The position numbers were made by a program, and so were the translations under genes. This document shows positions 2,464 through 54,200 of a DNA stretch of 64,000 nucleotides, piece by piece; positions within the stretch are counted from its first letter, which is position 1; each line of letters begins with the position of its first letter. This DNA comes from Vitrella brassicaformis CCMP3155. Lineage: Eukaryota > Protista > Chromerida. The stretch spans positions 1-64,000 of the forward strand of contig CDMY01000323.1 of the NCBI GenBank assembly GCA_001179505.1, written 5' to 3'. The notes under the pieces were generated by a model. The model saw only the letters and a list, made by a program, of their open reading frames with translations, did not search any database and was not told the origin of the DNA.

Positions 2464-5400
2464 CTAGAATGCAGCTGCAAAGACGTGAGTGTCAATGTTG
2501 ATGCCTGCGAAGCCGACAATGCCCCTCGTCAGCCCGTATGTGTCGGTCATGGCAGAAAGCTGAATGGTCAGCTCATGCAACGACTGAGCCTGCATCCATG
2601 ACAGAAGACCACGCACCACCATCATGTCCCATGTCTCTGTCTCTCTCTCCAGCCGACCTCGCTTCCCTTGCCTCACCCTCACAAAGGTGAAATCGAACCA
2701 CTGCGGACACGCCCAGACGACCCAATCAAATGCGTCCACCCTGAGGACCATCATCAGCAGCAGAGACAGCATCACAAAGAACAAGAGCGGCTCGATCACA
2801 AACTCGGTCAGAGCCTCCACTGATCAACCAAGGGAAAGGAAACACACCAGTGTGATGTGATGCGATGCGTGCGCATGTCCCCTGGTCAAGGTACTATCAT
2901 CTATACACTTACTGGAGCAGGCCAGCACAAAGTCTTGGTACACCAGATGTCTGCTACGGGTCTCTGTGCCCTCAGCCAGCTGTTCAGACAGAGCGAAGAG
3001 CAGTAGGAAGCCGCAGCATGCAAACCAGTACAGCAGCGCTATGGCCTGCATACGTGACGCACAGAGATCGAAGGCGTTGTGTATGTCTGTCTGTCTGTCT
3101 GTCTGTTTGATAGGTCGTGTTGGTTACGATGCCGATCCGCTCCTTGATCCGCCAACGACTCAACACGGCGATCTTTGCATCCAATGAAAAGTGGCCTGCA
3201 TCCATTCCACACAACACACACACAGACACACCCCTTACTGCCGAGCTCACAAAGATGACAACACACACTGTGCGGCATGTGGGTGCAGGCAGTCGACTGA
3301 TCACTCACCAGAGTGTCTGCCGGTGACGTCAGCGACGCGCCTGAGTGACTTGACGGAGATCTGCGGTCCTGTGAGGATCGCCATCCGCCTGCTCTCCGAT
3401 GGCATCGGTTTCATCGCCGTCCTGCCTCCGGTCGTATGGCCAAAGGCCGGGTGATGCGTGATACCTGCAGTAACCCATGTGCAATGTGCAATGTGCAAGA
3501 ACGAGACCGGCATATACCATGTCTCGATCTAAAGGGATCGCTTACGGCTTGCATCCGGGAGAAAGGGTATATGGGGGACCGTCTTGCGGAACAGGACTGT
3601 CCCATACAGACACAAAGGGTGAGGGTATATGTGTGTATGTAAGGGTATATGTATGTGTATGTTTTCCCCTTACAAAACAGGGCGATGGGCACCTTACAAA
3701 CACACACACACACACGCACGCACGCACAGACACACCTCTTCACCAGTCTGCCTGCGCATCCATCCATTTGGACGGTTCAATCAAGTGGTATTAATTGGTA
3801 TCATGCCAGAGGCATCCCCGACCCCCCCACTCAGTCACTCACCGGCTTGCTGAGAATGATTGCCCACAGCAGGACAACCAGCTGCCGAAGGGTGAATTTC
3901 CAGCTGATTCCTCCGGATTGGAAGCTCATGATAACACTGTCGGTGTCCCGCTGGCTCTGCTGGGTCTGGTTGAAGAACATCCCACACATCGCTATGATAC
4001 CCAGCGTGATGCTTCCTGATGCACAACGTGAGAACACGTCTTCGGCTGTGTAGGATGTCTTCTTTTGGGGTGCGAACCAAAGAACAAAGTGCGTTGCGTA
4101 GCCGTGTAGCTGAATTTGATTGATGTATGCGACCAGCCACACAGAGAGACACAGACAGGGCTATCGTGAAGACGGGGACGAATCGATCAATGAGTTTCCT
4201 GTCTTACGTGGGGTTGAGGATGAACAGCTTCTCAAGGCATGCACACAACCAGCCACATACCGAGAGCATACGAGCCTCCTTCCATGGATGTCTTTGTGCA
4301 CACGCGTCTACCTTGAGAAGGGGATGATCCCGTCGGCAGACTTCTTTGAAGATCTTCCCCGACGACCATTCGACGTACCTGAAGCACAATCTCTCAATTG
4401 GCCGCTTCCTCACGAACCCAATCTTATACGTACGTACTCAATCCTCCGCAGAGTGCGCGTCACCATCAGATCGACCTCTGCTTGAAGGTCACCCCACAGC
4501 TCCGCTATCGGTTTGCGTCTTGGCGAATCACGATGTGACGATGCCTCAGACGATGGCTCCATAATCGTGACCTGTCTCCTCATTCTCCCCCTGTCGCCCT
4601 CACCGATCGCAATCGACACGGGCCCGGCAACCTTGGGGCTCTCATCATCGCCATCACCGCGGGCTGCGGGTGACTGGCTGCCGATGCTGCCATCCCGATC
4701 TCCCTGCGGCCGCCACGCCGGCATTGGAGACGCTCTTGGCTCGCTGAAGACAATCATCGCGGCTTCAGAGGGCGCGCAGAAGGAGGAAGTGGGTGAGAAG
4801 ACGTCGCCAGCAGACGGCTGGGCCTGTGTCTGCTCCGGCTGCGGAATCTTCGACATCGACAGGTGCAGTGGCCCTTGCTGTACGGTCATGGTGCTCCCTT
4901 GCGTCTCGTAGTAGCTGCTTTGGCCCGCTTCGGTCATGATGCCCGACAGGTGCATGTCGATTGCACTGCTGAGAATGCCATCATCCGGTTCATTCCCAGC
5001 ATCGATGGGGCCGGGCTGTGTGCCCATCGGGCTCGTGCACGACCCCTGCCGCGGCCCATCTTGTGCCGTGGTCGTTGAGATGGCCCGCGTTGGGCGGTTG
5101 GCATTTCGGATCTTGGCCTGCCAGTCTCTGCGGAAGGTGCGCTGAATGAGCACGGCCGCCGCTTGCTGCCTTTGCAGCTCACGAAGGAGACGCTTGCGCA
5201 ACGCCTCCTTGAGGATCCCACTCCTGCACGCAGACAAAGGGGACCGAAGCAGATGATTTCAATGTACTCATTAAGGATGCGTGGCATACATACGTACTTG
5301 ATTAGAGTGACAGTCTGTTTTGGCGTCGTCTTGTTGAGCACCTTGCTAAATAAAGTGCTCGCCAGCGTACTCAACGAGCCGACGGGCCGCTTCTTGTTTC

Positions 5401-8400
5401 GCCGGTCGTTCTCCGCGTTGATGACGCCCTGCGCGGCTTGCATGTCCATCATGTCCATCGCGGCCTCCCTGTTGGATAAGCCGGGCAACACTACTTGCGA
5501 GGGATCCTCCCGGTCCTCGTCATCAGAAGAGCCGGTCCTTGCGAGAGAGACGGGCTTCTTGATTCGCTTTCTAGTCACTGATGCCGGGCTGTCTCTGTCC
5601 CCTTCATCTGGCATCGGCTGCTGCTCCTGCTCTACTTGCTCCTCCCCCGGCTTGTCTTGGTCGTTGCTGTCGGGCTGTGCCCGTGTCTCCGGCTGCGGAG
5701 GTGTGAAGTCTGCCATTCCTTTGGTGGTGGGTGTAAAGGTTTCTCCGAGGTACTGCAGATTGGCGGGCTCCCCCTTGGGCCACTGCTCCGGTGACACCAC
5801 AGCGGCTGCGCTGGCTGTGGGGGATGTGGGCATGACGACAGCCTGACGTCTGCGGTAGGTTGACTTGATGAAGTCGATCAGCCTGCATGAAAGGCGACAC
5901 AGAATAGTGTGTCGGGTGCAGCCAGCTGGAAGAGACAAACAAGCGCATACTCACCTCGGAATAGACTTGCGGAGTCTGTTTCGATACTCCTCTGTCGTTC
6001 GCCGCTCCTCCTTAACGTTAATGTCTTTGGGAATCTGTGGCGAAGAAAACAGCATCGAGAACTGACGAGACAGCCTTTATACAGCAGAGAGACAGCCAAA
6101 CGACGCACACACAGGAGCATCCCTTCATGATGGTGTATCTTCGGTTGATAGTAAGATGCTGCTTATCTTACCACCTCGCAAAACCGCGCATTGGCGCGTT
6201 TGACACAGCAGACCTGCCTGTGCCTCCGCTTTGAGAACTCATGTGGCTGCCTGTCCGCGCGCGAGCCAGCGGTTCCCGCACGTCAGACAGATATGGCGTA
6301 CTCCGCTCTGCAATCAGATCGTGTCGAACCGTCCTGAACGAGAGAATCAAGTGTGCATCTCCATTCGTACATATGATGCGGACAATCGACCTTATGGTGC
6401 GGAGTTCAGACAAGTGTAGTGTTGGCTCTCGTCTGCGGCAGTGGAAGAACAGCCCCCCGACAAAGCGGCAGATGAGGAAGTCGCACAAGAAGGAGTTGTA
6501 GCACGGGCCGTAGCAGCTCCGCATTGATTTGCGCAGCCTCGTGCGGGCCCTATGCTTCGCGTCCAACAGAGGGTCAGTCATCCTGATGTCGACACAGATC
6601 AGATCGGACAGATAGCCAGTGTGACGAGAATGATCCAAGACCGGATCTGACATCGCGTTCGTGTGTGACCAACCATATGTCGAGGAGGATTTGGTCGGTC
6701 ACACTGCAGGGGACATGGCAACACGTACACGGAAATGAGAGGACACGATGCGCTTACGGGTATTTGCAGTCAAAGTATAAGGACATTGCGAGGCACAGCA
6801 GATGGATGGACATCATGACAATCTGCACACACACACATACATCAATCCCTTTGTCCATCCGTCCACTTGGCACGATCCTCCTCTCACCACAAAAGCTGCA
6901 GCGTAGTTTTGAACCCATGCATTGGCATCGGCTATTCTTTTGATTGACGACTCGGTCAGCGCGCCCTCGATGTTGCTCTCCTTGATGACCGTTCTGAAGA
7001 GAGCCGAGAAGGAGGTGAGATGGGTGCACACGCAGCAGAGAGTGGCCGCATTCGACAGACTCTCGTTGACCCAGCAGCCTGTACACATATAAAGGCAATC
7101 GATTGGTGCAAATATACACGTATATACACGGACTGACCTCGTGTGTCCCACTGGTGCGTGGTGGTGTTCCAGAATCCGCATGCGACGTCAACTCTTGTGG
7201 TCAGGTTGGCAGCAGTGTCGTTGACTTGCAGCGATGCCACCTGGCTCTCACCAGGCCGAGGAATGAACAAACGGAACACCTCACCGACAGTGCTGGTGCC
7301 TTCCTGTTTCGCCACATTGACATCTGCGCCACATCGACGTACTGCCACACTCAGCGTCCCACGTTCTGCGCTCCTCAGTGTGTTGTTGGCCAGCACACTG
7401 AGATTGGCTGTTTGTTCCTCAAACGCAGCCGACGAGTAGGCGAAGGGATCCTCTGTCCAGAAGACCATCTGCACACTCTCGTTGTTGCTGCCACTGCCGT
7501 CGGCACACTGCCCGCCTGGCGGGATCATGGCGTCCAGTGATGATGGGAGAGCGACGGCAACAGAAGAATTCGCCGTCTCCGCCTTGTTGATCGTCAATGT
7601 GGCCCCTGTTGCTGCGTGTTCCTTGCGGACGACCTTGACGGATGTGGTCCTGGATGGGCTGGCTATCTCTCTCTCTTTGACAGCCGTCCGGCTGGCGGCA
7701 ATTGCTAGGCTGTCTCCCAGTTGAGCAGTGGAGGCCAAGACCTGCGACGCGAGATCGTGATGCTGATGCTGCGAGTCCATCTCGCCTCTCAGGCGGCGAT
7801 GTGTGCCGCCGGCGGCACACATGAGGCTTCGATTCAGCTGTCTGAAGAGGCCGGCTGCGGAGTCGAGGTAGTGTGAGAGCCCTAGGAGGGCCTTGCCGGT
7901 GCCATCTGTGGCGGTGCTGATGGTGCTGGCTGAGACGTTCGCAAGAATCGACAAGGCAGACACCCCTGCCGCCGCGGCGTCGATGTCGTCGCTCTCTGAA
8001 AACCCCTCACACAGACAACAATGAATGCAGGCTTGGTTTCTTTACTGTGTGCTTATCTATGTGCGTGGCTGCCAGCCTACCTGTCGTATCAGCAGCCTCG
8101 ATTGTACTGGTCAGTGTCACAGCCGACAGCAGCACCTCCCCAGGGCTACTTGACTCCTCACTCAGCCGTGTAGACCGCTCACTTGCTGCCACTTCCACCC
8201 GTCTGAGGAGGGCATTCACCACTCGTTTTCTTTCGGTCCCGTTGAGGGCAGCTACGCTGGCGCTGATGTTGGCGTTGTCGGCGCTGCTCAGCACACTGGC
8301 CACCGCGATGGCCTTGACGAGTCGACGACCAAACTCGTCCAGTGAGTGTACAGGGGGCGGTGTGGGCTGACTGTCTTCGTTGAGAAGTTCCCCGATCATG

Positions 8401-11400
8401 TCTTCGATTTCCGCTGGGTCGATGGCCCCCGGGTCCTGCAGTCAGTCAGTCAGTCAGACAGGCAGGCAGGCATAGCAATGCAGTGAGAGAGGGGCATAGC
8501 AGAAGATGGCTTCCAGGTTCTCCCACTGATCGGCTGACTGACCCTGAGTTTGTCCAGGTTGTCTGTGATGCTGTCAAAGTCCACGGGCGCCACTGAAGGC
8601 GTGGACAGTACATATAAATGTGTGAAATGTGTGGTAGCGGGAGACGCAGACCGTTGGTTCTTACGTGTGCAGGGCGATCCGGGGGAGGGACAGGTCCATC
8701 CAGGCTCGATCTCACAGTCACTGCTGCAGCCATCACCTGCACAGACAAATAGACCTGCCGTCTGTTGTCTGGATGTACAGGGACTTCCGACCATTGATCA
8801 GGTTGCCATCATCGCACTGCTCGGCGCCTCTGAGGCTTCCATCGCCGCACACAGCTGATACATACACACACACAGACACACACACACACATACACTTGTA
8901 CACATGTGGACACACACGACAGTGGTCTGTTTGATCCCGGGGCCATCGACCTACGAGAGCACGGCGACCCTGGAATTGGACACGTCCACCCAGGCTCGAT
9001 CTCACAAACACTACTGCAACCGTCACCTGCACAACGCATAGACGTGCCGTTGCCTGCCTGCTTAGCTGGGTGCCGACCATTGATGAGGTTGCTATCGTCG
9101 CATTGCTCCTGGCCCCTGACCCTTCCATCGCCGCACACAGCTGATACGAAGCCACATAAATGAACGAATATAGCCATGGTTTATCCCCTCCGTGGCGACT
9201 GATTGAGGGTGCCTACGAGAGCACGGCGACCCGGGGGCCGGACACGTCCATCCAACCTCCAACAGACAACGATCACTGCAACCATCACCTACAGGCACAC
9301 AGTCACACAGGCAGGCAACAAAGGGGAGCCGGCTTGCATGAATACTCCGTATCTGTTACCAGAGAATAGGTTGCCGTCATCACACTGATAGATACGGAGA
9401 ATACAACACACACATGCGTGACAGGCAGGGGGCCCATATTCCTTAGACCCGCCGTGTTGTGTCACTTACCTCCTCTGTCGGAACCACTACACGACCGTCT
9501 ATCAGTATCGGCTCGTTTCTCACCAGTAGACCATCGCCGCAGATCGCTGCATCAGACCCCAGTGTGTCCGTGTGTTTTCCTTCTCGTGCGCGGGCTTACA
9601 GTAGCATGGTTCTCCTGGTGTCAGGCACTGCCAGCCCGTCTCCTCGTGACACGTCTCACTGCACCCGTCTCCACTGTCAGTGTTGCCATCGTCACATGTC
9701 TCTGGGGCTACCACCACCCCATCCCCGCACACTTGGGCACCAAGCGTCACCACTACACACACACGACAATGTCGGATGCATCTCTTTCTCTCTCTCTCTG
9801 TGAGCCTATCCATGGACGCGTACCGACCGATGCAGTCAGTGAGACACTGACAGTCGCGGATGGCCGAGTCATATGCTGGGTCAGGTGTCTCCACCCATTT
9901 CGCCGGCTGGTCTATGTAGCTGGCCCATTTCAGGTGACACAGGCCGCTGGCTTGGTGGAAAGAGAATCCACCGCACAAAGGCACCGTGCGGCACTCGGTT
10001 GCGCAGGTATCGAATGTTTGATTGTCAGCGCTAACAAGTCCCTTGAGGTTGCCCCCAGCGAGGAGCGTGGCGTTCAGTCGTCGCATCAGGTTGCACGCTG
10101 CACCAGTCACCGAACCAGCACATGTGTTGGATACAGATGATGTCTCGCGTGCTACCACGCCCACCCACCTGGTTCAAGGACGAATGTGATTGCGTCGGCA
10201 GCGGAGGCATCGGCAGCATTTCCCGAAAAGTCCGTCACGTCAGCCGATGGACTCAGAGCGATGACGGCCTGGCCTGTCGAAAAGCCCACAGGAGCCTCGT
10301 CCATTCTCACCTCGACCTGGAAGGCATCGTCCCACCCCGGCCAAGTGGTCGACGGCGACGTTCCGGCTTGAAGCTGCTTGTGCAGGGTGACACTCTCGGC
10401 ACTGATGTTGGTGCAGAGAATGGCGATGTCGGAAGTAGCGATTTTTGTGACGGGCTCGGAAATGTGGACGTCGACGGAGACGTGGATGTGTGCGGGGTCG
10501 TCGTAGTGGTAGTTGAAGGTCCCGCCAGCGACCATGGCACCAGCCGCATCCAGTTTGCGCACAAAGGAGACACGGGGAGGGGTTGAGTCTGGAATATATT
10601 ACAGAGACGCCATCCATGACACGACACCCGCTATGGATAGCTGATGTACCTGTCCTGATGGCGCAGCTCCGGCTGCTCGAGACTGTCTTTGTGTCCGACG
10701 GCCCGGAGAGGTCGGCATCGCTGTAGAGGCGGCACGGGAAGGGCCGAGGATAGGATGCATCAAAAACAAAGATCTCACAGCTGGGCTCCTCGCGGCACAG
10801 ACGCGAGCACTTCCACCAATCGTTCACTGATGTACTCGATATCAGCCCGATGTCCTTTCCTTGAGACCACGCCATGCCACAACCTGCACACACGAGCAGA
10901 CGAAGAAAATCGGTAATCCGGGTGGGCTTTCCCCCACTGACTGACCAGAGTGCACAATAAGCTCATTTGACGGCGTGTTAGCCTGATCATCCGACGTCCG
11001 TCTGAAGACCATATCCTTCACCTGGACGGTGACCTGACCTTCCTGCACCGCCCATAGCCTCTCCTCAATCACGTGGTCATCCGGCTGACTGACCAACTCA
11101 ATAGCTCCCCCGACACCACCAACAGTCTGCCATGCGGACAGCTCATCGAATGGCGCCTCGAAGGTCAGATCTTTGATAGCATCGGAAAATCGGAGAGTGA
11201 TGTTGAACACAGTCGCCTCTGCGTCGGGAAAAGCCGTCTGTGTGGTTATCATCACTGTCGGGGGGTCCACTGTGGGTGGACGAGACAGGTATCCATCGAT
11301 GACGAGCAGCACGGCTCTACATGTCTGTGCTACATTTGTGGCTCACCGCAAAGAGGCGTCCGTTTCTCACACTGCCCCACAGACAAAGCACACAGATCAG

Positions 11401-12487
11401 GAACTCAACAACGTCGATGTCAACACGTGCATCCATCGATCCTCGGTAGTCTCACCATGGCTCTGTTATTGTCTTGGTCCCCTTCCTTCGTCTGCATGAC
11501 CAGATCCCTGTACTCAGACAACAGCAGACCGACACTCTCCACATCTCCCTCCGTGTAGGGCTTACCATGGCTCCTCATAATCACTGCCCCTGGCGAGAAT
11601 GATCCCACGATCGTTATTGCCGTACGTGTACGGTTCCCGGCCGTCCCATGCGATATTCCACAGACCCCTCGAGCTTCCCTCCCACTGCCATCCGCCGCCA
11701 GGGGACCAGTCGTCCCTAGCGGCAGCTGTGCCGCCAAGGTCGGGTATTCGCTTGGGCTGCTCATCCACATAGCTGCCCGTCTGCATTCATACCGACACGG
11801 CGCATTTGAGACAGGGCTGGTTTGCATGCATGGATGGAGCCATGTATTACTCGCTTGAGTCTGGCCCAATAGGCCTTGTTCTGGTCATTGCGACTCCGCA
11901 GCTGGTCTGCCTGAGCACACATTGCAGGCAGGACACGCCGTTGGGTACTTGAGAATTTTGCGGATTGGATACACCCACCAGCCATTGTGCCTCATAAGCA
12001 TCGTCAATCACCACCTGAACCACCCACAAAGACGGCCATGTATGTGTGTCACAGTGTGCATTATCAGTCTCCGAATTTCCATACGAGGTCGCCTATATAG
12101 GTCGGCTTTGACCAAAAGCAGGCCGATTTCAGTTCGTCATGCTTCTTCTTTATGCCATTGTCCCAGTAATAACGTGAGCAGCTCCGGGGCCGTTGCACCC
12201 AGTCATCTGCAGAGAGACGGAGACCAGAAGATATCAGTCATTTGCATGGTGTCTTTCAATTTTCCACCCACCAGGCCACTTCACATCCTGCACACACATT
12301 GATGACGTCTTCTACCAGGTGTTTCATCTAGTGTGTGTGCATCGTGATGGTCTTTTCAACCCACCTCGAATAATTCGTCATCGTCGGCGCGTGACACTGC
12401 GGTGAATAGATGGAGGAGCAACAAGATGAAAGCAAGAGAACGACGTGGAGATGGCGTGGTCCATGGATGAATGCAATGCTCATTCAT
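2464..12487 (-). CDS. Multi-exon polycystin-1/adhesion-receptor-like protein: signal peptide, 2 Ig-like, 2 PAN/apple, 4 Myxococcus-type Cys-rich (DUF4215-like) repeats, GAIN/GPS, about 5 TM, IQ-like motif
   Basis: Exon 1 MNEHCIHPWTTPSPRRSLAFILLLLHLFTAVSRA; PAN-like CATECRTVPLCGGFSFHQASGLCHLK and CSRLCREEPSCEIFVF; VCGDG..CDDGN..GDGCS repeats at 8660-9740; spliced GPS ACGFWNTTTHQWDTRGCW..CCVCTHLTSFSAL; hydrophobic exons near 6770, 3990, 3850, 3020 and 2780; stop at 2464. Confidence 0.8.
6996..7185 (-). other. GPS (GPCR proteolysis site) motif split by a 59-nt phase-1 intron (7079-7137)
   Basis: C-G-F-W...W...G|C...C-V-C-T-H-L-T-S-F; His codon at 7020-7022. Confidence 0.9.
8660..9740 (-). repeat. 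Four tandem Cys-rich (DUF4215-like) coding repeats, three split by introns
   Basis: VCGDGVVVAPETCDDGNTDSGDGCS; AICGDG..CDDGNLFSG|DGCSDRC; AVCGDGRVRGQEQCDDSNLING|DGCSSVCEIEPGWTC; AVCGDGSLRGAEQCDDGNLING|DGCSSDCEIEPGWTC. Confidence 0.9.
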
Positions 12488-21076: not shown

Positions 21077-24000
21077 TCAGTCGTCACTGTTGGCCCCACC
21101 CGGTGGATAGACGCCGCTGGACGGACCACAGCCGGCCTCGGCTGACGTTGACGCGGCCACGCTGTCGTTCTCATCACTGCTCAGCCGATGCCAATCGACA
21201 CGAATGAGCTGGCAGGGGGGCGTCAGGGCGATGGCATCAAGATCGCTCTGCAGCCGCGATTGGGTCGAATCGACGGGCGACGATGCGCCGCTCATCGGCA
21301 CGTCCTCTGCTGCATCGCCACGTGGCGTCTCCACCACAGTAGGTGCGAGGCTCGCAAGGACCTCCGGAATGGCATCCTGCAGGCAGCACAACAAACAGCA
21401 CAGGTGAGTATAAGCACAGACACAGACAAGCACTCTCTGACCGGTGGGCTGCCCGCCTCGATGAGTGTCCGTTTGGCCTTGCGGAACGCTTCATACAGCC
21501 CCCGCCAGCCGTCAGTGTGATGCTGGTGGTCCGTCGGTGCCTCAGTGTCGGCCTTCTCGAGATCAATGCCGTCGACCATCCGCCTGAGGGCCTGTTGCTG
21601 ATGCATCTGCTCTCTCGTGACGAGTTCGTCCACCACATGGCCCAGATTGGCCTGCAGGTCGTGCAATGTGATGCCCGCAGACACGTCCGAGAGCTCTGGC
21701 TGGCCATCTGGTCCATCGCTGGACGGCTTGCCGGCCTCCAGTCGAGTCGACACTGCACAGATCACGTCACATCATTGACCACATGAGTTGGCAAGTTTGG
21801 TACGTATCATGATCCGCGCGGCAAGCTGACCTTCGCTGGATCGTTGCACGCGGAATACATTGGAGAGGTCGCTCGTCCGCATGTGCCGCAATTTCTGCCC
21901 GGCCAAAGAAACAACACCACGGACATGGGCAGGTCCTCGCTTGTTTCCTTCTTTACGGTGGCGCTGCCGTCGTCGGGTTTAGGCAGGTGGACGACCACGT
22001 GGCTTTCTCGTCGGCTGCGCGTCTCCACCCGCTTCTGCCGCAGACTCTGCACCAGGAACGCTTGGCTCCACAGAAACTCATGGCTGATCCCCCGACAGAC
22101 AGCAGAAGGCACCGACAACCCCGTCACTATTCGCTGTACTGGTGGCATATGTATGTGCCTACAAGTCGCTGGGCACATTTGTGAGTTTGAGTTTCTCTAT
22201 GGCTTCCTGCACGGCGGCCGACGTCAGCTGCATGGCCGCCACCACACGATGCACCGGCCGGCCGATATAGGGATGGCACCCCCCTGATGAATCAGAGGGG
22301 CCGTCGGCGGAGAGGGCTGCGTTGGACCAGTCATAGAAGACCTTGGGCAAAACGCGCCTTCTGTCCTCCTCTCGGTGGATGAGCCACGACACTAACGGCC
22401 CCGTCACACAACCGGATATCAAACGGGCTGAACAAACGATACACGCAGCCAGGTACCATAAACGTGAAAACTCTGTGCTCTTCTGGTGCCCACCGATGGC
22501 CTTTTTGCGATCCGTCAGTGCCGTGTATCTGTAGCCAATTTGCAGCAGACCATGCCGACAGATCTGCGCCCCCAATGTCACATAGTACGCCAGATTGGCC
22601 CCAATGACGACCACCACAAGGCTGATCGTCAGCTCCAGTGAGCTCCCCTCGGGCAGCATGACAACAAACTGCATGACGAATAGTGACAGCAGCCACACCA
22701 GCAGCCCAGGCAGCTCAGACCTATTGAGGATGTCCATGCTACCACGGTCAAACGGCCACACGATGAGTTGCAGCGCCAGACAGACAGTGGCGACCACAGT
22801 CCAGCCCAGCAGCTGCTGGCGGGGCTGCGCCGTCGCCTGTTGTGCGATAAGGAGCACCAAGACGCGCCGCATGGCCAGCACAAAGTCCCAATAGAAGAAG
22901 CCCTTGCGATACCCGACATAGAGGAAGCCCACTCGCCGTCGAGTGTGGTGGTCCTGCAGGCTCTCTCTATGCCGCCACAGAAACGTCACGCCCCACACCA
23001 CAGGGGCCAGTGTCCACACCAACAGACCGGCCACAGCAATCCACAGGAACGGGGCGTGCTCGGCCGATCGGCAGATGACATGTGAGTCGAGGTCCATTCG
23101 GGGCCGCATGTCATCCATCGGGTCAGTTTGCAGCAGACTGACACTCTCGCCGATCGCGATACGGATAACATCGTCCACATAGGGGTAAGGCCGGCATCGC
23201 AGGAGGGCCAGCATGTTCTTGGTGACCGTGGGATGAATAAGTGTGAGGATGACAACCACCATCCCTCCCCGCTTGTCGAGCCACTGCCGCCATCGGCCAC
23301 TCTTGCGGAGCTCCACCGACGAATGCTGACAGGAGGCCGGCGTCACTGGCTCGGTTCGTGAGCCCTCCTGGAACGTGACCGATCGCTGGTGAGGGCCGTG
23401 TGTGGCAGCGTTGTCTGCCTTGCCATTTGTCAAAGACGAGGGCGCTGAGAGGGCTCGGAGGTAGGTGTCGGTGGCCAATAAGGTCGACTCGTCGGACTCA
23501 ATGCGCCGCCTCGACTTGAAGGCACCACGCACTCGGCCAAAACCACTCGCTGCAGCAGCCATGATACGACAAGCCAGAAATGAACACAATGCATTGTCTT
23601 GAAAAACATGTGTATGCGTGTTTGGTTACCGATGAGGGGCACAGCAGTGAGCCAGATGAGTGGCAGAATAAGCCACATGGCGTGTCGGTACAGCACGCAC
23701 TTGTCGCCCACATATGGCCTCAGCAGACACTGATACACCTGATAGCTTTGCGCGACGCCACCGTCCCAGGCGAAGAAGCTGCCGAGCAGCGAGGATATTT
23801 GGTCGCCCCAGACGGACGACTCGTCAAACACGAGAAATGCCAAACCACACACCTGCGGACACACACAGTGACAGCAAGGAGACGATGCGGGGCGAGTGCA
23901 CGTGTGTTTCTGCATCTCTTAACGTACAGCGGTGATGTGCGAGAGTCCAATTTTGGTCAGTTGGGAGGGAACCTCAGCGCGCAGAGACGACGACGCTCTG

Positions 24001-27000
24001 AACACACGCACAGAGGCAACACGAATATCGATCGACTCAAAGGCTTGCCGTGAGAGACGGACCTTTCCGCGAGTGCGGTGAGTATGAAGATTGCCATTAG
24101 AGTGGCGAGAACGAGCAGCACATTGACCAGCACGATCTGCCATGGCGGAGCACATGGGGCGCACGGCTGCTGGGGCGTCTGACGCGAGAAGCCAGACGCA
24201 GACAAGGCAAAACGTAAAAATGGCGGCTCTCAGAGGGATGCAGTTGGCTCCTACCAAGCATATGTTGAGTCCATCAGTTTTGTTAGTGCCTATACAGGCC
24301 GACGGCAATGGACACGGCATCACTATCGGCAACAGAGTCAACCTAGCGCCATACCTGAGAGACACCAAACCTCACTCTATTGCCTGTTCCCCAGTCGCCT
24401 TTCTCGCCTTTCCTTCCTACGTCGTCACTTCTCGTGTGGCGTTGTCGGGTGAACCAGCGGACTGCAGCTGGACAGTGAGCTGAAAGAAGCCCGGCAGCAC
24501 GCTCGCATTGTAGTTGACGGGAGCAGAGCAGTCCAATCCCGGCAAACAGTCCTGGCAGATCCAAGTGCTGCGACTTCCATCGGCGCCGCCCTTGCGCACG
24601 CCGACAGACCCCGCTGTACATGGCTCACACGGCTCCTCGCCGCGCTGATGGCCGAGACGGCAATAGCACGCAGGTGAGCCCTCGTCAGAACCTGCGCCAA
24701 CAGTCTAAGTCGCAAGGGCTACTGTCATGCGTTTCTTTCATCTCTGACCTGCATCATCGGGACATTCTTGGCACGTTTGTGTGCCAACTTGTCTGTTGCT
24801 GTATGTGCCAGCTGGGCACTTGGTGCAGTTGATGCCGACGCCAGCGTATCCAGGCAGGCAGCGACAAAGGGCGTCCGACTCAAACGTGTAGTCGACCTGT
24901 GCGAGCAGTAAGCACAGTGAGTACAATCAGTATGTGTACTCGTTGTGTATCTGACCATACGCAATCTGACCTCAAGTCTGTTGAATGTGGAGCAAAAGTC
25001 CGTGCACTCGAACCGCTCCTCACCATTGTCCAACGTCCGCACGACATATCCTGCACAAAGCGCATGCAGTCACGCAAGAACGTGGACTAAACAACAGTGG
25101 GTATCTGTTTTGCATGTGCTATGACGGGCGTCCTTCCCTACCCTGCGGGTCGGGCACCAACTGACGTTTTGCAGATATATCTCGTCACCAACTGACGTTT
25201 TGATGCGCACCGCTTGATTGACGCAAATCCTGACACTTCTAAACCACATACATACCCCACAGACACCGATGAAGAAACACATATATCGGCCATATATATA
25301 TAGGCTCTCTGCTCTTTTCTCTCACCACGATGGGTGTAAGACTGACACACACCGGTGTCTGCTCACTTCTTAGGTCTGGGTTCTGTGTGAACCTCGCGTA
25401 GTCGGATGAAAACAGCCTGGAGCCGCGTGCTTCCACTCTTCTCAGTGAGTTGTTGCGCATGTCGACATAGTGGACTCGTGATCGAAAGGTCTCGATGGCG
25501 GTGATGTTGTTGTCCCTCAAAGAGATTGATCCTAAGTGCCGAAATCCTAGCTCGAAAAAAAATTCGCTGTCCGTCACCTACTCATACGCACGAAAGAAAG
25601 CTGGGTGTGCGTTTGCCTGTCTAGGTATAAGATCGGTTACCAATGGGGATTGGTTAAGCACTCTATGGGAGAATGCCAAAAAGGCCTCGCAACGCATCGC
25701 GCTTTGCAGACTGCAATTCGATGCATCCAGCACCACCAGACTGTCACACACAGAAAGACACAGAGCAGGAAGCAAATGCCAGAAAGACAGTGACACGCAG
25801 TCACTTGGTCTGCCATTTAAGGGGCATGAGGAACTCAGTCACGTCGACATTGATTGGGTTGTTTGATACGTCCAACTCGTACAGACTGTCCCATTCAGGC
25901 GGCTTCGACGACAACAGCAAATCCAACGAACTCCCATTTGCCCACTCTATCGCCTCACACATATGTTCACACAAAGAACACATACAACTTATCCCCCTGC
26001 CTATTTGCCTGCCTGCGTGTGTGCCTGTGTGTGTGCTTACCGTTGTACCCCGGTGTCAAGCAGACCCTTTCCGGTGTGGAACCCCTTTCCAGTGTGGAAC
26101 CCCACTTGGGCCACTGGCTAATGCGATTGTTGGCGAGGCGTAGCTTCTCCAAGTTGGGCATTGAGCGAAAGCCCTCCGGCAGGGTGGTCGAAAGGTTCTC
26201 GCTCAGATCCAGATGAACCAATCTGATAAGATTTAAAGACATACACACAGTGTCACGTTGAGACCAAGGAGGGTATCCTCTGTTTCCATCTCGCATATGG
26301 CCATCACTGACGTTTGTGGTATGCTGCCGGTGACTCCCGTGATGAAATTGTGACGAAGCCAGGTGCGCTCGAGGTTGGGGAAGACAGAAAGGTCAACGGA
26401 CCTATTCAGACGGTTGAATGAGACGTCCAGCCTCCAAAGGCTCTCGTATCCCGAGCCGCGAATGCTGTGCTCCACCAATCCGGTCAGTCTGACACTTCAC
26501 ATGCCCAAACATTATGTGCGCCAGCGTTTAGCTCCCATGCAGTGCACCGGTTGTAGAATGCGAAAATCGCATTGAGGTTCTTTAAAGCCGAAAAGCCGAC
26601 AGGCAGGTGACCCTCGAACTAAAACGTGGCGACAGTACACATGCTGACAAGTACTTATCACATGCCGCTCTCCTCATTACTGGTCATACGGAATTGTCGT
26701 CAACCCACAGTATCCTGAGCGACGTGAGGTTGCTGAGCGGCTCAAGAGTACCGGTAAAGTTGTTGAGGTTCAAATTCAGAAACTCGAGTGACTTCCACCC
26801 ACTCCACGTATTCGGCAGAGTACCGGACATCTGCACATACAAACACACAAAGCCACAATAATTCGTGTGGCGTTCCATGCCATACGTCGTTCTCCTGCCG
26901 TTTGGTTGTACCGAGTTGTTGTACACCGACAGCGTCGTGAGCGACGGGAGGTTACTGAGGGGCTCCAGTGTGCCGGAAAACTTGTTGTTGCTCAAGTCGA

Positions 27001-28564
27001 GATACTCGACCGACTTCCAGCCACTCAGCGCGTCCGGGAGAGTGCCCGAGAGCTGTTTATGAAACGCACACAGGAAGGAACACATATGCGTGCGGTGTCA
27101 TGTGTTATTTATCTGGGTGTATACCTGGTTGCCAGACAGGTCCAGTCTGCGAAGCTTTGCCAGCTTCCCAAGTTCTGGTGGGAGATGGCCACTCAAGCCC
27201 GACTCATGCATCTCGAGAACCGTCAGGTTCCCCGCATTGCCTAGCGAAGCCGGCAGTGGACCAGAAAACTGACAGTAGAAAGAAAGCAAATAGCCCTCAA
27301 AGTCACATGTACGTTTGTGTTGTTTGTGTCCTGCGCACGTTGTTCCGTGACATATCTAGCTCCACTAGTTTGTCCATCTTGGCACCCAGCCCGTCCGGCA
27401 GCGAGCCCGAGAATCGATTGTCCCTCAGATTCAGGATGCGCAGCTGGCTCAGTTGCACCAGTGACTGAGGAAGCTCCCCACTGAACGAATTGTTCCGCAG
27501 GCCCAGCATCTGCAAGCGAGAGAGGGCGCCGAGATCGTCAGGGAGAGGGCCAACGGTTGACTCGAGACCCAGTCGAATCAGGTTGCGGCAAGACGTCACA
27601 CTAGCCGGAAAGGGACCCTCCATCTGCTTGTTTCCCCAGATGTCCAGGATCCGCAGGCGCCGAAGTCTGCCGATGTCTTGAGGGATGGGTCCTGAAAGAT
27701 CGGTTTCCACAAGCCAGAGAGCCTCAAGGCGCGAGCAGTTGGTGAGGGAGGGCGGGATGAAGCCGTTTGTTGAACTCATGAGCCCGAGGTACAGGCCCTT
27801 GAGGTAAGGCAGCTCGCCAATTGTAGCTGGAATGGGCACCTTCATGCCGTCCTGACATGATAAACAGCATTACAACAAGAATGTGCGTAAATCAATTTGC
27901 ACATCAGATGCAACTCACCACTCTAGCCAGCCCGATAGCGCGAAGAGATCTCACTTTGGCGATCTCATCACCCAAGCTTCCCTGCATTGGCAGATTCCAG
28001 GCCAGGAGGCAGACCACATGACGCAGCCGATAAAACGCCTCCAAGAAGACGAAAGGCGCCCCCCCCCCGCTGTGCCAATACAGCCGGTACATCCGATACG
28101 TCCCCATCCTCGGCATCCCCTGTCAGTAAGATGATATAGCCCTCCCGCGGGCCGCCGTCCGCCAGCGCCTCACTCAGCCGCACACACGTGATGAAGGACA
28201 CGACACACAGGTTGTCCTCAAAGACGGACTTGGTGTCGTTCACCAATCCGGCCTCGTCAGACCACTCGAACAGAGCCGCCGCATCCTCCTGACACGAATC
28301 GCACCGCTCCAGCTCCTCCATCTCGGTATACGGAAGGATGTTGTCGCCTCGCCGCACTTGGCCATCTGAGAGTTCTACGTCAGCCGGACGGAAGAAAATA
28401 GAGAGTTGCAGGAGCTTCAGCCGCCTCGGGTCACGCCAGCCCGGAGGGAGGGCAGGGGACGGAGGAGCTGTCTCGTTGGCGGGCTGGAGGATCCTCTTGA
28501 GGGGCGAGCAAGCCACGAGCGACGACGAGATGGCAAGAAGGACAGCGCATAGAGGAATCACCAT
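21077..28564 (-). CDS. Multi-exon receptor: signal peptide, plant-type LRR ectodomain, ephrin-receptor-like Cys repeats, about 9-TM CRMP-type membrane module, cytoplasmic tail
   Basis: MVIPLCAVLLAISSSLVACS; many LxxLxxLxLxxNxLSGxLP repeats at 25400-28050; CRCLPGYAGVGINCTKCPAGTYS and CQDCLPGLDC..PGF; TM module with DLDSHVIC..H, GFLYVGYRKGFFYWDFVLAMRRVLV and WPF..LNRSE; spliced tail VPSD-F-HEFLWSQAF; 3' end approximate. Confidence 0.85.
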
Positions 28565-41199: not shown

Positions 41200-41499
41200 N
41201 NNNNNNNNNNNNNNNNNNNNNNNNNNNNNNNNNNNNNNNNNNNNNNNNNNNNNNNNNNNNNNNNNNNNNNNNNNNNNNNNNNNNNNNNNNNNNNNNNNNN
41301 NNNNNNNNNNNNNNNNNNNNNNNNNNNNNNNNNNNNNNNNNNNNNNNNNNNNNNNNNNNNNNNNNNNNNNNNNNNNNNNNNNNNNNNNNNNNNNNNNNNN
41401 NNNNNNNNNNNNNNNNNNNNNNNNNNNNNNNNNNNNNNNNNNNNNNNNNNNNNNNNNNNNNNNNNNNNNNNNNNNNNNNNNNNNNNNNNNNNNNNNNNN
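41200..41499. other. Assembly gap (300 N) flanked by poly-G runs
   Basis: Read directly from the sequence. Confidence 1.
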
Positions 41500-51263: not shown

Positions 51264-54200
51264 TCAGTCGGCATCGCCCCTGCCGGACTGTCCGGCCCTC
51301 AACCTGGCGAGTGCGCCCTGCCCGCCTGGCCCGCCCTTCCCCCCACCAGCCCCAGCGCCCCCCATCATTTTCTCCCTCTGTTTCTCTCTCTCCTGCTCCG
51401 CCAGGCGTTCCTTCTCTTCCTTGTCGAGTCGCTTCTTTGCCTCTTTCTCGAGCTCTCTCTCAATGGCCTTTTGTTCGGCGGCCTGCTCGCCCAGCGAACC
51501 GAAGACCTCCGCCGGCACAGAGGCCTCCAGGTCCATCTCGATGTCAATCTCCTCGCCTGTTGGTTGGTGCACGGATGTGTGTGTGTGTGTTGGTTTGGTC
51601 GTGCTGCGTAGCAGACCTGTTGGCTTCGGTTTGGTGGGTGCGGTGGGTGCTGGTGGCTGTTCGGCGGCCTCTTCGCCGACCATTGCAGCGTCCCTGAGTG
51701 AACGAACGAGGGAAGGGGGAGAATTTCAGACAGACAGACAGACAGGCAGGCAGACAGTGTGCGGGTGGGTGGATTGTGTTACGGGTGCGTAGTTACGGGT
51801 GCGTACCTGTAGTATCCCAAGCCATGGGGTCCCATCTTGAAAATGTAACCCAATCGACCGCCCTAATCAATCAAATGACATTGATGGAGGGATGAACACA
51901 CAACCCAGAAAGAGACACGGAATGTTGTGTGGCAATCCTTCTGTTGTCCTTCTGCTGTTTACCGGTCAACTGACCTGGAATGCGTCTGTTTGTATGAATG
52001 GCGGCCCCCCAGCGACGGCTCTCTTCGCCTCGTCCACACGCCTCTTTTCTTGAAGCTGATCGATTCACACCACCACGGAGGGAGGGAGGGATACAATACA
52101 CAAGACGACACCCACATGCACATCAATGAATGGCGTGAGGTCATTTGTTTGGCTTCGGTTGTCTGGCTGGCAAGGTCACACTCAGCGCACCTTTCTGTAC
52201 TCTTCCTGCGCTGCGGCGATGTCGGCCTCCTCCTGAACAAACGAAAGAACGACGAACGAAGAACGACAGACAGACAGACAGACAGACAGACGTGAGTTCG
52301 TGTCGGGGTGCAGTCCATCCATCCGTCCATGCGTGTGGCACCCACCTGTGTCTTCCTCTTCTTTTGAACCTCGAAGTCGGCCTCCTCTGCGCGACGCCTC
52401 TTGACCTCCTCCTGCCGCACGCACATACACACGACACACGACACACAACACACAACACATTGAAAATACATCCATCCATCCATCCACGTGATACACGTCG
52501 ATAAAGCCATCCGCACCTGCTGCTTGAGTTCTGCCTCTGCTGCTGCCATTGGGTCGAGGGGCAGCTGTGGGGCCGCCTCAGCGACGATGTCGGCCACATT
52601 GAAGTGAACCTGTGCGTAGATGGCCTGCACACTCCGCTTGACGCGCAGCATGTCCCTGAAGGTGTCCTCATTGCCGTGAGCCACCTCAAACTCACGCCAC
52701 TCCTGCACACATGGGGAGGGAGGGAGGGAGGGAGGGAGGGAGGAAGGGAGGAGTGTATCTCTGTGATGCATTTGGGTTTGGTGTTTTGTGTGTGGCTCAC
52801 CTTCCAGAACTCGGCTTCCTTTCTGGGGTCGCAGAACTGCGAAGTGTGTTTGTATATCTCTCGGGCGCGGTCGATCTCGCCGAGACTCTTCTCCAATGTG
52901 GCGAACTTCAAACACATCATGATCACCTGAGAGACGGATGGATGGATGGGTGGATGGCACAGAGGTAGCACACATGTCGGTCGGTCTGTCTCCCTGTGTG
53001 CTGTGCTAGGTATGGACATTGGCTTCCTTCACGTACCTCTTTGTCTTCCAGTTCTTCGACCGCCTTTTCGTATATCTTGCGGGTCTTGGTGACGCCAAAC
53101 AGCTCAGCCGTCTGCTCACAGTGCACACACAAGTGAATGCGACGACGGATGGATGGGTTGATTGATGGATGGATGGATCAGTGGATGGTGGGTGACCTTG
53201 GCGATGTAGAGGAGGTAGAGTGTGTATTTGTCTGCCTTGGCGGCACTGAGGCAGGCCCGCTCATAGAGGGCCAGTGCGTGCCGTGCCAGGCCGTACTCCT
53301 CCTCTAGTCGCGCGTACAGCAGATACAGACCCTTCGAGTACTTGGGGGGCGCATCGGACACAGCCTGCATCAATCCAATAAATGGATGGATACATGGATG
53401 CATGGACACATCAACACACACACACAGGGAGAAGGAGAGTGAGAGGGGAAGGAAAGACCACATGTGTGTGCCCATCAGGCGTACCTGTTCGAAAAGATCC
53501 CGCGCCCTCTCGAGTTTTTTGCCGCCATATCGTGCGACGAATTTCGTGAGGTAGAAGAGCCATATGTCGTGGACGTGCGGCCACTTGAAGAGATTCACGC
53601 CCTTCTCGTACACGCGGAACGACTCCTCGTAGAACCGCATCTCCTGACGGACAGATAGCACACACAGACACGCGAATGGATGGATGGATGGCTTACATTC
53701 ATTCCTTTGCTTGACTGATTGATTGCTGACCTCTAGGTAGTGTGCGTAATTGATGATGAGTTGTGGAGTGGCCACCTTGAGCTCAATCATCTTGTCGTAA
53801 CACGCCCGTGTCGTCTCGAGCGTACCGAAGTTCTCCTCCTGCACACAAACACACAGTGGGAGGGAGGGAGGGACGGAGGGAGGGTGTGTGTCATCCATCC
53901 ATTTGTGGGTGCACTGAGCTCCCCTGCCCACTGGTTTACCAGGTCGGCGCACAATGCCCACACCTTGACGGATCTGTACAGCCGGGCCTGCACAGAGTCC
54001 TTCGGCGCATTGCGGGGCCGATTGATGGCCTGGCGCGCCACCTGATGCACACACAGGCCACGCACAGCATGCATCTATCTGTCCATCCATCCATCCATCC
54101 ATTCTCTCCCGTATGTGTGCACCTCGAGTGCCTTGTCGAAGTGTTTGTGCTTGATTTCCATCTCAGCCCAGTGGCACCAGATGGTGGCCAGGTCGTCGAC

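Follow-up and report, generated by a model that had tools for sequence, protein, structure and literature searches.

A GAIN/GPS receptor family of the chromerid Vitrella brassicaformis with a predicted five-helix membrane module

The GAIN domain is the self-cleaving switch of adhesion G-protein-coupled receptors (GPCRs) and of polycystin-1, and how and when it first became coupled to membrane signalling modules is an open question. A locus of Vitrella brassicaformis CCMP3155 bears on this question. In the 64,000-nucleotide (nt) stretch analysed here (the window, on contig C323 of a 72.7 Mb assembly of 1064 contigs, which served as the searched genome), the minus strand from 12487 to 2464 carries one intron-rich gene, whose public product of 2254 residues, CEM02297.1 (A0A0G4EW80, here P0003), is named 'Apple domain-containing protein'. 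An earlier interpretation of the DNA without database searches (the sequence-only reading) had taken the product for a half-polycystin built with apicomplexan-style PAN domains, in a free-living relative of apicomplexans. The organism, a chromerid, is indeed such a relative, but what kind of receptor does the gene encode? The window protein is no demonstrable member of either the polycystin-1 or the adhesion-GPCR family. We consider that the locus as a whole is best explained, with a probability of roughly 60%, as a single-gene GAIN adhesion receptor with five transmembrane (TM) helices that signals through cleavage and its stalk, and whose membrane part would be a third kind of module placed behind GAIN. 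The chromerid family to which it belongs joins a GAIN/GPS that looks intact to a conserved five-helix module for which no relatives were detected.

Stop-free frames on the minus strand already revealed PAN, Cys-repeat and GAIN-like exons, and mapping of P0003 onto the DNA gave 41 exons, including one micro-exon of 19 nt, separated by introns of 51-150 nt that are all of the GT-AG type; splice junctions were checked locally on three short stretches. Vitrella gene models were predicted by Augustus with intron hints from RNA-seq (PMC4501334). The start of CEM02297.1 is an internal ATG at 12299, located on an acceptor site. Absent from this model is a first coding exon at 12365..12487 (minus strand, as for all features of the gene), comprising 41 codons with the start codon and a signal peptide and reading MNEHCIHPWTTPSPRRSLAFILLLLHLFTAVSRADDDELFE (translation MNEHC..RRSLAFILLLLHLFTAVSRA followed by DDDELFE). 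A 77-nt GT..AG intron joins it to the exon at 12287-12272, giving DVKWP-DDWVQRPRSCS, and the mature N-terminus of the extended product aligns to the signal-peptide-bearing paralogues P0002 and P0005. The signal peptide and start coordinate of the sequence-only reading are therefore right, the gene has 42 coding exons in total, and the public gene model should gain the signal-peptide exon. As deduced from the sequence, the full product is a type-I-like surface receptor of approximately 2290 residues with its N-terminus outside and its C-terminus inside the cell. Our analyses of the spliced product are based on P0003, which does not contain the signal-peptide exon.

Is this one gene or two? In tblastx comparisons the window gene is collinear with the paralogous loci L009-L016 over the range from about 12250 down to 2473, through the ectodomain, GAIN, TM1, conserved islands in the loop and the helices near the C-terminus; P0003 spans the whole locus with GT-AG introns throughout; and the paralogue protein P0004 (UniRef entry A0A7S1P7..., 1185 residues) covers GAIN to the C-terminus in a single open reading frame (ORF). 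P0004 is known from its UniRef entry only, and we take it to be transcript-derived, judging by the accession series. Because of this evidence the locus is read as a single gene, and the in-frame stop at 4410-4412, which had been feared to end a first gene, falls within a 59-nt GT-AG intron (4437-4379).

The linker and GAIN domain are encoded at 6999..8592, where a linker of about 20 residues after the Cys repeats is followed by helical subdomain A (exon 8435-8081 and the start of exon 7995-7138) and then by beta subdomain B. A 59-nt intron (7137-7079) lies within the GPS motif (7183-6999), with the upstream exon ending ...VACGFWNTTTHQWDTRG and the downstream exon opening CWVNESLSNAATLCCVCTHLTSFSALF. 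Exon-by-exon Pfam scans returned no GPS above the cut-off because this intron splits the motif; the second half alone scores 16.5 bits, and stop-free frames of paralogues reach 22.9 and 23.3 bits (cut-off 22.5). On the spliced protein P0003, GPS (PF01825) is matched with 30.3 bits over model positions 2-45 of 45 at residues 1201-1242, bearing out the GAIN/GPS call made from the letters, and paralogue proteins score 27.7-36.9 bits. The motif is complete, with four Cys, two Trp and H-L/T (the slash marks the predicted cleavage point), reading CGFWNTTTHQWDTRGCWVNESLSNAATLCCVCTHL/TSFSALF. The predicted autoproteolysis site H-L/T-S-F comprises residues 1235-1239 (7008..7022), with the scissile bond between bases 7017 and 7016, and T1237 lies 38 residues before TM1. 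All 11 paralogous loci examined keep H-L-[TS], and all 11 paralogues keep every Cys and Trp of the GPS, including P0006, which is only 30% identical.

A profile of six family proteins, searched against all PDB chain sequences, retrieved the GPS/GAIN regions of ADGRF1 (1e-5), ADGRL3, ADGRG3, ADGRG6, ADGRD1, CD97 and latrophilin-1, and a profile of the GAIN exon retrieved nothing useful from the PDB sequences. At the level of sequence, the closest matches of the GPS are adhesion GPCRs. The GAIN domain of a paralogue (L009:4566-5633) was modelled using AlphaFold2 with a pLDDT of 60 and a pTM of 0.65, and the best Foldseek matches of this model are themselves GAIN domains, namely those of BAI3, CD97, CELSR1, BAI2, ADGRL3, GPR126, GPR110 and latrophilin-1. 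In the model the GAIN fold is present, with helical subdomain A and a beta-sandwich subdomain B that encloses the GPS strands.

Hydropathy analysis locates TM1 at residues 1275-1296 and four further helices at 1962-80, 2006-29, 2121-40 and 2172-91, with the same pattern in all paralogues, which agrees with the earlier description of one TM helix, a very long loop and about four more helices. TM1 (AAAFVIVMMSIHLLCLAMSLYF; 6772..6902) spans an intron (6887-6823) and precedes a cytosolic loop of approximately 660 residues. TM2 and TM3, connected by a short N-glycosylatable outer loop, are encoded at 3674..4090, where the 19-nt micro-exon (3692-3674) completes TM3. TM4 (IAIALLYWFACCGFLLLFAL) and TM5 (FVIEPLLFFVMLSLLLMMVL), assigned by hydropathy and conservation with an acidic outer loop between them, lie at 2743..3130 and are followed at 2464..2742 by a conserved cytosolic tail of about 63 residues and the stop codon (2466-2464). 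The sequence fits a topology with the N-terminus out, the loop in and the C-terminus in, because 16 N-glycosylation sequons precede TM1 while the 660-residue loop and the TM2-3 outer loop have one each, five K/R residues stand just before TM4, and the TM4-5 loop is acidic.

Several cytosolic segments are strongly conserved. A juxtamembrane segment at 6390..6702 (VTDQILLDIW/MTDPLLD ... Cys-rich ... REPTLHLSELR) has a mean identity of 70% among the core paralogues and 39% to the divergent P0006. Within the 660-residue loop, a conserved helix of about 50 residues carries an IQ-like motif (AAAVLIQRTFRRDWQAKIR; 5106..5162), AAAVLIQRxWR, with identities of 62% among the core paralogues and 49% to P0006, and a long helix is predicted at this site in a low-confidence AlphaFold2 model that otherwise renders the loop helical or disordered. 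The most conserved cytosolic segment (73% and 53%) lies just before TM2 at 4073..4520 (RRK..ELW.DL..EVDLMVTRTLRRIEYVEW...RRDHPLLKLFILNP.YTA.QRT) and includes the GT-AG intron that holds the stop. Identities for TM4-5 and the tail are 66% and 36%, and the remainder of the loop is 23-26% identical. A side observation concerns the juxtamembrane segment: the 91-nt intron after the 30-nt exon VTDQILLDIW (window 6582-6705) contains, directly before its acceptor, a degenerate exon copy with a 20/33 nt match whose translation, YLSDLICVDIR, is in frame with the next exon. This may be a vestigial duplicated or alternative micro-exon.

How widely does this arrangement occur? The large GAIN exon has at least 10 paralogous loci in the genome, and a TM2-3 exon profile run against the whole genome found 12 family loci only. 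A GAIN-exon profile built from nine paralogues and searched exhaustively using HMMER against 1.84e9 representative proteins returned six proteins (P0001-P0006), all reading as Vitrella family products. The TM modules of P0004, P0006 and P0003, used as queries in word-indexed searches, found nothing outside Vitrella, and two metagenome pattern scans gave no relatives, the sensitivity of both approaches being limited. The exhaustive profile search is strong, but GAIN sequences diverge fast. Judged by these searches, the family consists of about 12 dispersed genes found in Vitrella only. We found no description of it in the literature. Public databases already contain the gene and the paralogues under automatic GPS/Apple names (P0001, P0002, P0005, P0006, P0007 and P0008 appear as 'GPS domain-containing', 'Apple domain-containing' or 'GAIN-B domain-containing'). 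The domain combination, which the sequence-only reading did not recognise, is confined to this Vitrella family but had already been catalogued automatically in UniProt.

The paralogues share with the window gene the chassis from GAIN-B to the C-terminal tail, their TM modules being 55-63% identical. The ectodomain layout of the window gene recurs in P0002, P0005 and P0007, a model truncated at the N-terminus; P0002 has one Cys repeat and a mucin-like Thr/Pro linker, whereas the window copy has four Cys repeats and lacks the linker. P0008 differs in opening with a Cys repeat and in its set of PAN modules. In the most divergent member, P0006 (G000:C439, L018), the GAIN and five-helix chassis is kept and bacterial immunoglobulin (Ig)-like repeats of the Big_5/Big_12 type replace the lectin, PAN and Cys repeats. 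Since conservation peaks in the membrane and cytosolic segments even with the unrelated ectodomain of P0006, the conserved unit is, as far as sequence comparison goes, the chassis of GAIN-B, stalk, TM1, cytosolic islands, four-helix bundle and tail, and the ectodomain is interchangeable; the chassis seems to have stayed fixed while ectodomains were exchanged. With about 12 copies that carry interchangeable lectin, PAN or Ig ectodomains, the family is therefore a natural test case for what GAIN domains are able to drive.

In the window protein the ectodomain comprises, in order, a C-type-lectin-like domain, an Ig-like module, a PAN domain, a second Ig-like module, a second PAN domain and four Cys repeats. 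Every element listed in the sequence-only reading is present; what it missed is the N-terminal C-type-lectin-like domain, encoded by seven small exons at 11348..12287 (approximately residues 5-179 of P0003). A pattern of Cys and Trp residues recognised by eye over about 170 residues (C..AC, GDLVVIDDAYEAQWL, YWA.LKR, GGGWQWEG..W..AW..REP, CEK) and language-model features of the matching region of P0007, for which Lectin_C accounts for 29 of the 30 named neighbours in the ESM-Atlas (best score 0.96), indicate this domain, although Pfam Lectin_C has no match on P0003.

The two Ig-like modules each occupy a single exon, at 10946..11269 (bacterial Big_5-like) and 10169..10588 (..HISEPV .. DVTDFSGN). 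They are assigned by a motif conserved in the paralogues, FS[DE]x[IV] ... D[FL][SA]GN, and, for the second module, by a weak profile match to the S-layer SAP Ig-like domain (E 0.14). This motif and match speak for the modules noted earlier, but neither has a Pfam match; BLASTP of the two exons against the Big_5/Big_12-bearing P0006 was not significant. Both PAN domains called from the sequence are well founded. The first (10650..10883) scores 21.7 bits with PAN_1 (cut-off 21.4) and 22 bits with PAN_4, the second (9828..10097; residues 528-572) scores 25.1 bits with PAN_1 exon-wise, and on P0003 PAN_1 is matched over two stretches with 34.4 bits, above the cut-off. Their supposed apicomplexan style could not be shown, the profile matches to micronemal PAN proteins being insignificant (micronemal antigen L2, E 0.16; MIC4, E 1.6). 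The four Cys-rich acidic repeats at 8665..9752, also anticipated, are confirmed, with four copies each of DUF4215 (PF13948, 116.5 bits) and of TIGR02232, 'cysteine-rich acidic repeat' (176.5 bits), on P0003. Exon-wise, DUF4215 scores reach 30 bits, repeat 1 lying within one exon and repeats 2-4 being split by introns into two or three exons each. The repeats, of the DUF4215/myxo_disulf_rpt type, match those of pappalysin in the PDB sequences (E 8e-9).

Could the protein be a true, very divergent homologue of polycystin-1, its five helices corresponding to TM1-5 of PKD1, that serves as the receptor subunit of a polycystin-2-like channel? The layout is the same: TM1 comes directly after GAIN/GPS, the first cytosolic loop is large, two plus two further helices follow, and the orientation is N-out/C-in. 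PKD1 carries a C-type lectin domain, and a lectin-like domain is indicated here. Vitrella also encodes polycystin-2-like channels: PKD_channel (PF08016) is above its cut-off at eight or more loci, on C47 and at least seven other contigs, none adjoining the receptor genes examined, and one ORF (G000:C47:172183-172566; L019:884-1630, minus strand) matches the pore region of human polycystin-2 with an E-value of 2e-17. Among named ESM-Atlas clusters, the one closest to the TM module has PLAT, but its score of 0.79 is at chance level.

The domain searches argue against this proposal. PLAT (PF01477) has no match in P0003 or full-length paralogues at E<=0.1, nor in four loop-covering paralogues at E<=10; upstream of GAIN in P0003 and the paralogues there is no Pfam match to REJ (PF02010); and PKD_channel has no match in either, with E<=10 as the loosest limit for the three families. 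The protein ends 63 residues after TM5, and the sequence-only reading was correct in seeing no channel module. NCBIfam models matched P0003 in the Cys repeat only, and no full-length polycystin model was among them. The family profile, searched against the PDB sequence set at E<=10, matched many adhesion-GPCR GAIN/GPS regions and nothing in the TM part, and retrieved no polycystin chain; in a control a Vitrella PKD2-like ORF retrieved polycystin-2 (including a chain of the 6A70 complex), PKD2L1 and PKD1L3, the presence of a polycystin-1 chain in the set not having been checked. In the whole genome, the TM2-3 exon profile matched none of the other Vitrella GPS/REJ receptor genes, and the affinity of the GPS to adhesion GPCRs points the same way. 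Since these searches showed no similarity of the TM region to PKD1-type modules, which the sequence-only reading had itself named as a refuting outcome, the claim of a half-polycystin by homology fails at the sequence level, and we rejected membership of the polycystin-1 family because PLAT, REJ and the C-terminal six-TM channel-like half, its three defining features, were not found. What resembles polycystin-1 is the GAIN/GPS (shared equally with adhesion GPCRs, to which it is closer in sequence), the lectin-bearing adhesive ectodomain and the order of TM1, big loop and four helices. Kinship beyond GAIN could not be shown from the sequence, the likeness being an analogy of layout, and we regard true homology as improbable. 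Partnership with a separately encoded polycystin-2-like channel is possible.

Another proposal accepts the GAIN domain and denies its activity: GAIN would be structural and uncleaved, and the protein a passive adhesin or anchor with a membrane part for retention. Several animal GAIN domains with near-canonical sites do stay uncleaved, for example that of BAI3 (PMC3321182), and the ectodomain consists entirely of adhesion and lectin modules. A mere anchor, however, would not predict that the cytosolic and membrane segments, rather than the adhesive modules, are the most conserved, nor does it sit easily with the invariance of H-L-[TS] and of the GPS Cys and Trp residues in the 11 paralogues down to P0006. 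We think this proposal doubtful.

A cryptic adhesion GPCR, in which the stretch 1341-1359 and a C-terminal GIVGFAGINI stretch would raise the count to seven helices, is far less plausible. A hydropathy peak of 1.52 at 1341-1359 and the resemblance of the GPS to those of adhesion GPCRs speak for it, but D and R occupy the centre of that segment, no 7tm_2 or other 7TM Pfam family is matched by P0003 or the paralogues even at E<=10, the sequon-poor, charge-rich loop with its IQ-like helix would be placed outside the cell, and the helix spacing is unlike that of any class-B receptor; on the family searches, the charged segment and the loop placement we rejected the 7TM proposal. The least credible alternative is that annotation has fused two adjacent genes, one for a secreted adhesin that ends with GAIN and TM1, the other for a separate four-TM protein. 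It is suggested by the long, poorly conserved TM1-TM2 region and by the stop at 4410 if its intron were retained, but rejected since the conserved blocks keep their order in at least eight dispersed, collinear paralogous loci, the stop sits in a canonical intron, P0004 (the UniRef entry) spans GPS to C-terminus in one ORF, and no conserved start codon or signal-like sequence precedes the four-TM part.

Several points weigh against the preferred interpretation, a cleaved GAIN adhesion receptor with five helices. The GAIN fold was modelled on the paralogue L009 and not on the window protein, with 22 intron-encoded residues included and at moderate confidence. The count of five helices is that of Kyte-Doolittle hydropathy only, and two segments, residues 1341-1359 (weakly hydrophobic and rich in Cys) and the C-terminal tail, could change the topology. 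An AlphaFold2 model of P0004 from a six-row alignment (pLDDT 40.7 overall, 35-52 in the membrane part) is too poor for a fold; GAIN domains rank first in Foldseek with it, which is uninformative on the membrane part, and ESM-Atlas searches with the TM module returned clusters without names, at scores that 4-10% of shuffled proteins also reach. Pfam IQ (PF00612) is below its cut-off of 20.3 bits in P0008 (16.6 bits) and P0004 (11.6 bits) and is not reported for P0003. Fast divergence, together with limits in the sensitivity of word-indexed searches, may account for part of the restriction to Vitrella.

If the receptor is of this five-helix kind, it may work as follows. The GAIN domain would cleave itself in the secretory pathway between L1236 and T1237, leaving the N-terminal fragment with its lectin, PAN and Cys-repeat modules non-covalently bound to the five-TM C-terminal fragment. 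A ligand or a mechanical pull on the ectodomain could then displace or remove the N-terminal fragment, which would expose the conserved stalk (TSFSALFRTVI..) as a tethered peptide, by analogy with adhesion GPCRs and polycystin-1. The stalk might in turn alter the state of the five-TM bundle, and the signal would leave through the conserved cytosolic elements, probably via Ca2+/calmodulin on the predicted IQ-like helix, with a polycystin-2-like channel as a possible partner. A bolder proposition, which we put forward tentatively and consider unlikely, is that the family represents either a third independent class of GAIN transducer, with a stalk-gated five-helix module and a calmodulin-binding IQ helix, or a free-standing ancestral polycystin-1 N-terminal module working with polycystin-2-like channels. 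If true, this would mean that GAIN tethered-agonist mechanosensing arose outside animals, on a different membrane chassis.

Elsewhere in the window, approximately 10 kb from the receptor gene, a 488-residue open frame with several hydrophobic helices (22162-23625, minus strand) matches Pfam TRP (PF06011) below threshold (21.3 bits, cut-off 28.5) and may encode a TRP/Flc-like membrane protein. Plant-type leucine-rich repeat exons (LSGTLP..L.YLDLSNNKFSGTL) at about 25200-27900 (minus strand) probably belong to another surface receptor gene. At 51959-54099 (minus strand) lie exons for a pre-mRNA splicing factor with HAT repeats of the SYF1/CRNKL1 type (PF23231, 186 bits), and a run of 300 N bases at 41200-41499 marks an assembly gap outside the receptor gene.

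How does the window protein compare with known systems? With the micronemal PAN adhesins of the related apicomplexans (T. gondii MIC4 and Sarcocystis micronemal antigen L2), it shares PAN/Apple domains in an extracellular adhesive array, but the similarity is that of the PAN family in general, and those adhesins are soluble or single-pass proteins without GAIN. With the Vitrella family, the already rich repertoire for extracellular recognition in the free-living (coral-associated) relatives of apicomplexans grows further. GAIN-domain proteins have been reported in Tetrahymena (>8 genes) and Dictyostelium (Arac et al., 2012; PMC3321182). They place GAIN/GPS in alveolates and before animals, and as in Vitrella the GAIN domain is followed by membrane helices; no sequence relationship to them was detected, the exhaustive GAIN-exon profile search having returned Vitrella only.

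The adhesion GPCRs (class B2, including latrophilins, BAI, CD97 and GPR126) have in common with the window protein the GAIN fold, for which they provide the best sequence and structure matches, and a modular adhesive N-terminal fragment, and the stalk T-S-F-S-A-L-F resembles their TxFAVLM tethered agonist. Unlike them, the window protein has five helices rather than seven, no 7tm_2, no HormR and a 660-residue loop after TM1. Fusion of GAIN to a 7TM module is reported to be confined to holozoans and has been placed in stem holozoans (PMC12716839). From the polycystin-1 family (PKD1, PKD1L1-3, PKDREJ and sea-urchin REJ) the window protein differs in lacking REJ and the C-terminal six-TM channel-like half, in having an IQ-like helix within about 660 residues of mostly disordered sequence where the first loop of polycystin-1 carries PLAT, and in a membrane part without detectable sequence similarity. 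The two nevertheless have much in common: a large adhesive ectodomain with a module of the C-type-lectin type, an H-L/T GAIN/GPS immediately before TM1, helices that are odd in number, the N-terminus lying outside, an extended first loop in the cytosol, a genome that also encodes PKD2-like channels and, probably, the logic of a tethered stalk. That logic is common to adhesion GPCRs and polycystin-1 (PMC13197933, PMC3321182), and polycystin-1 has come to be seen as an atypical adhesion GPCR responding to a tethered agonist.

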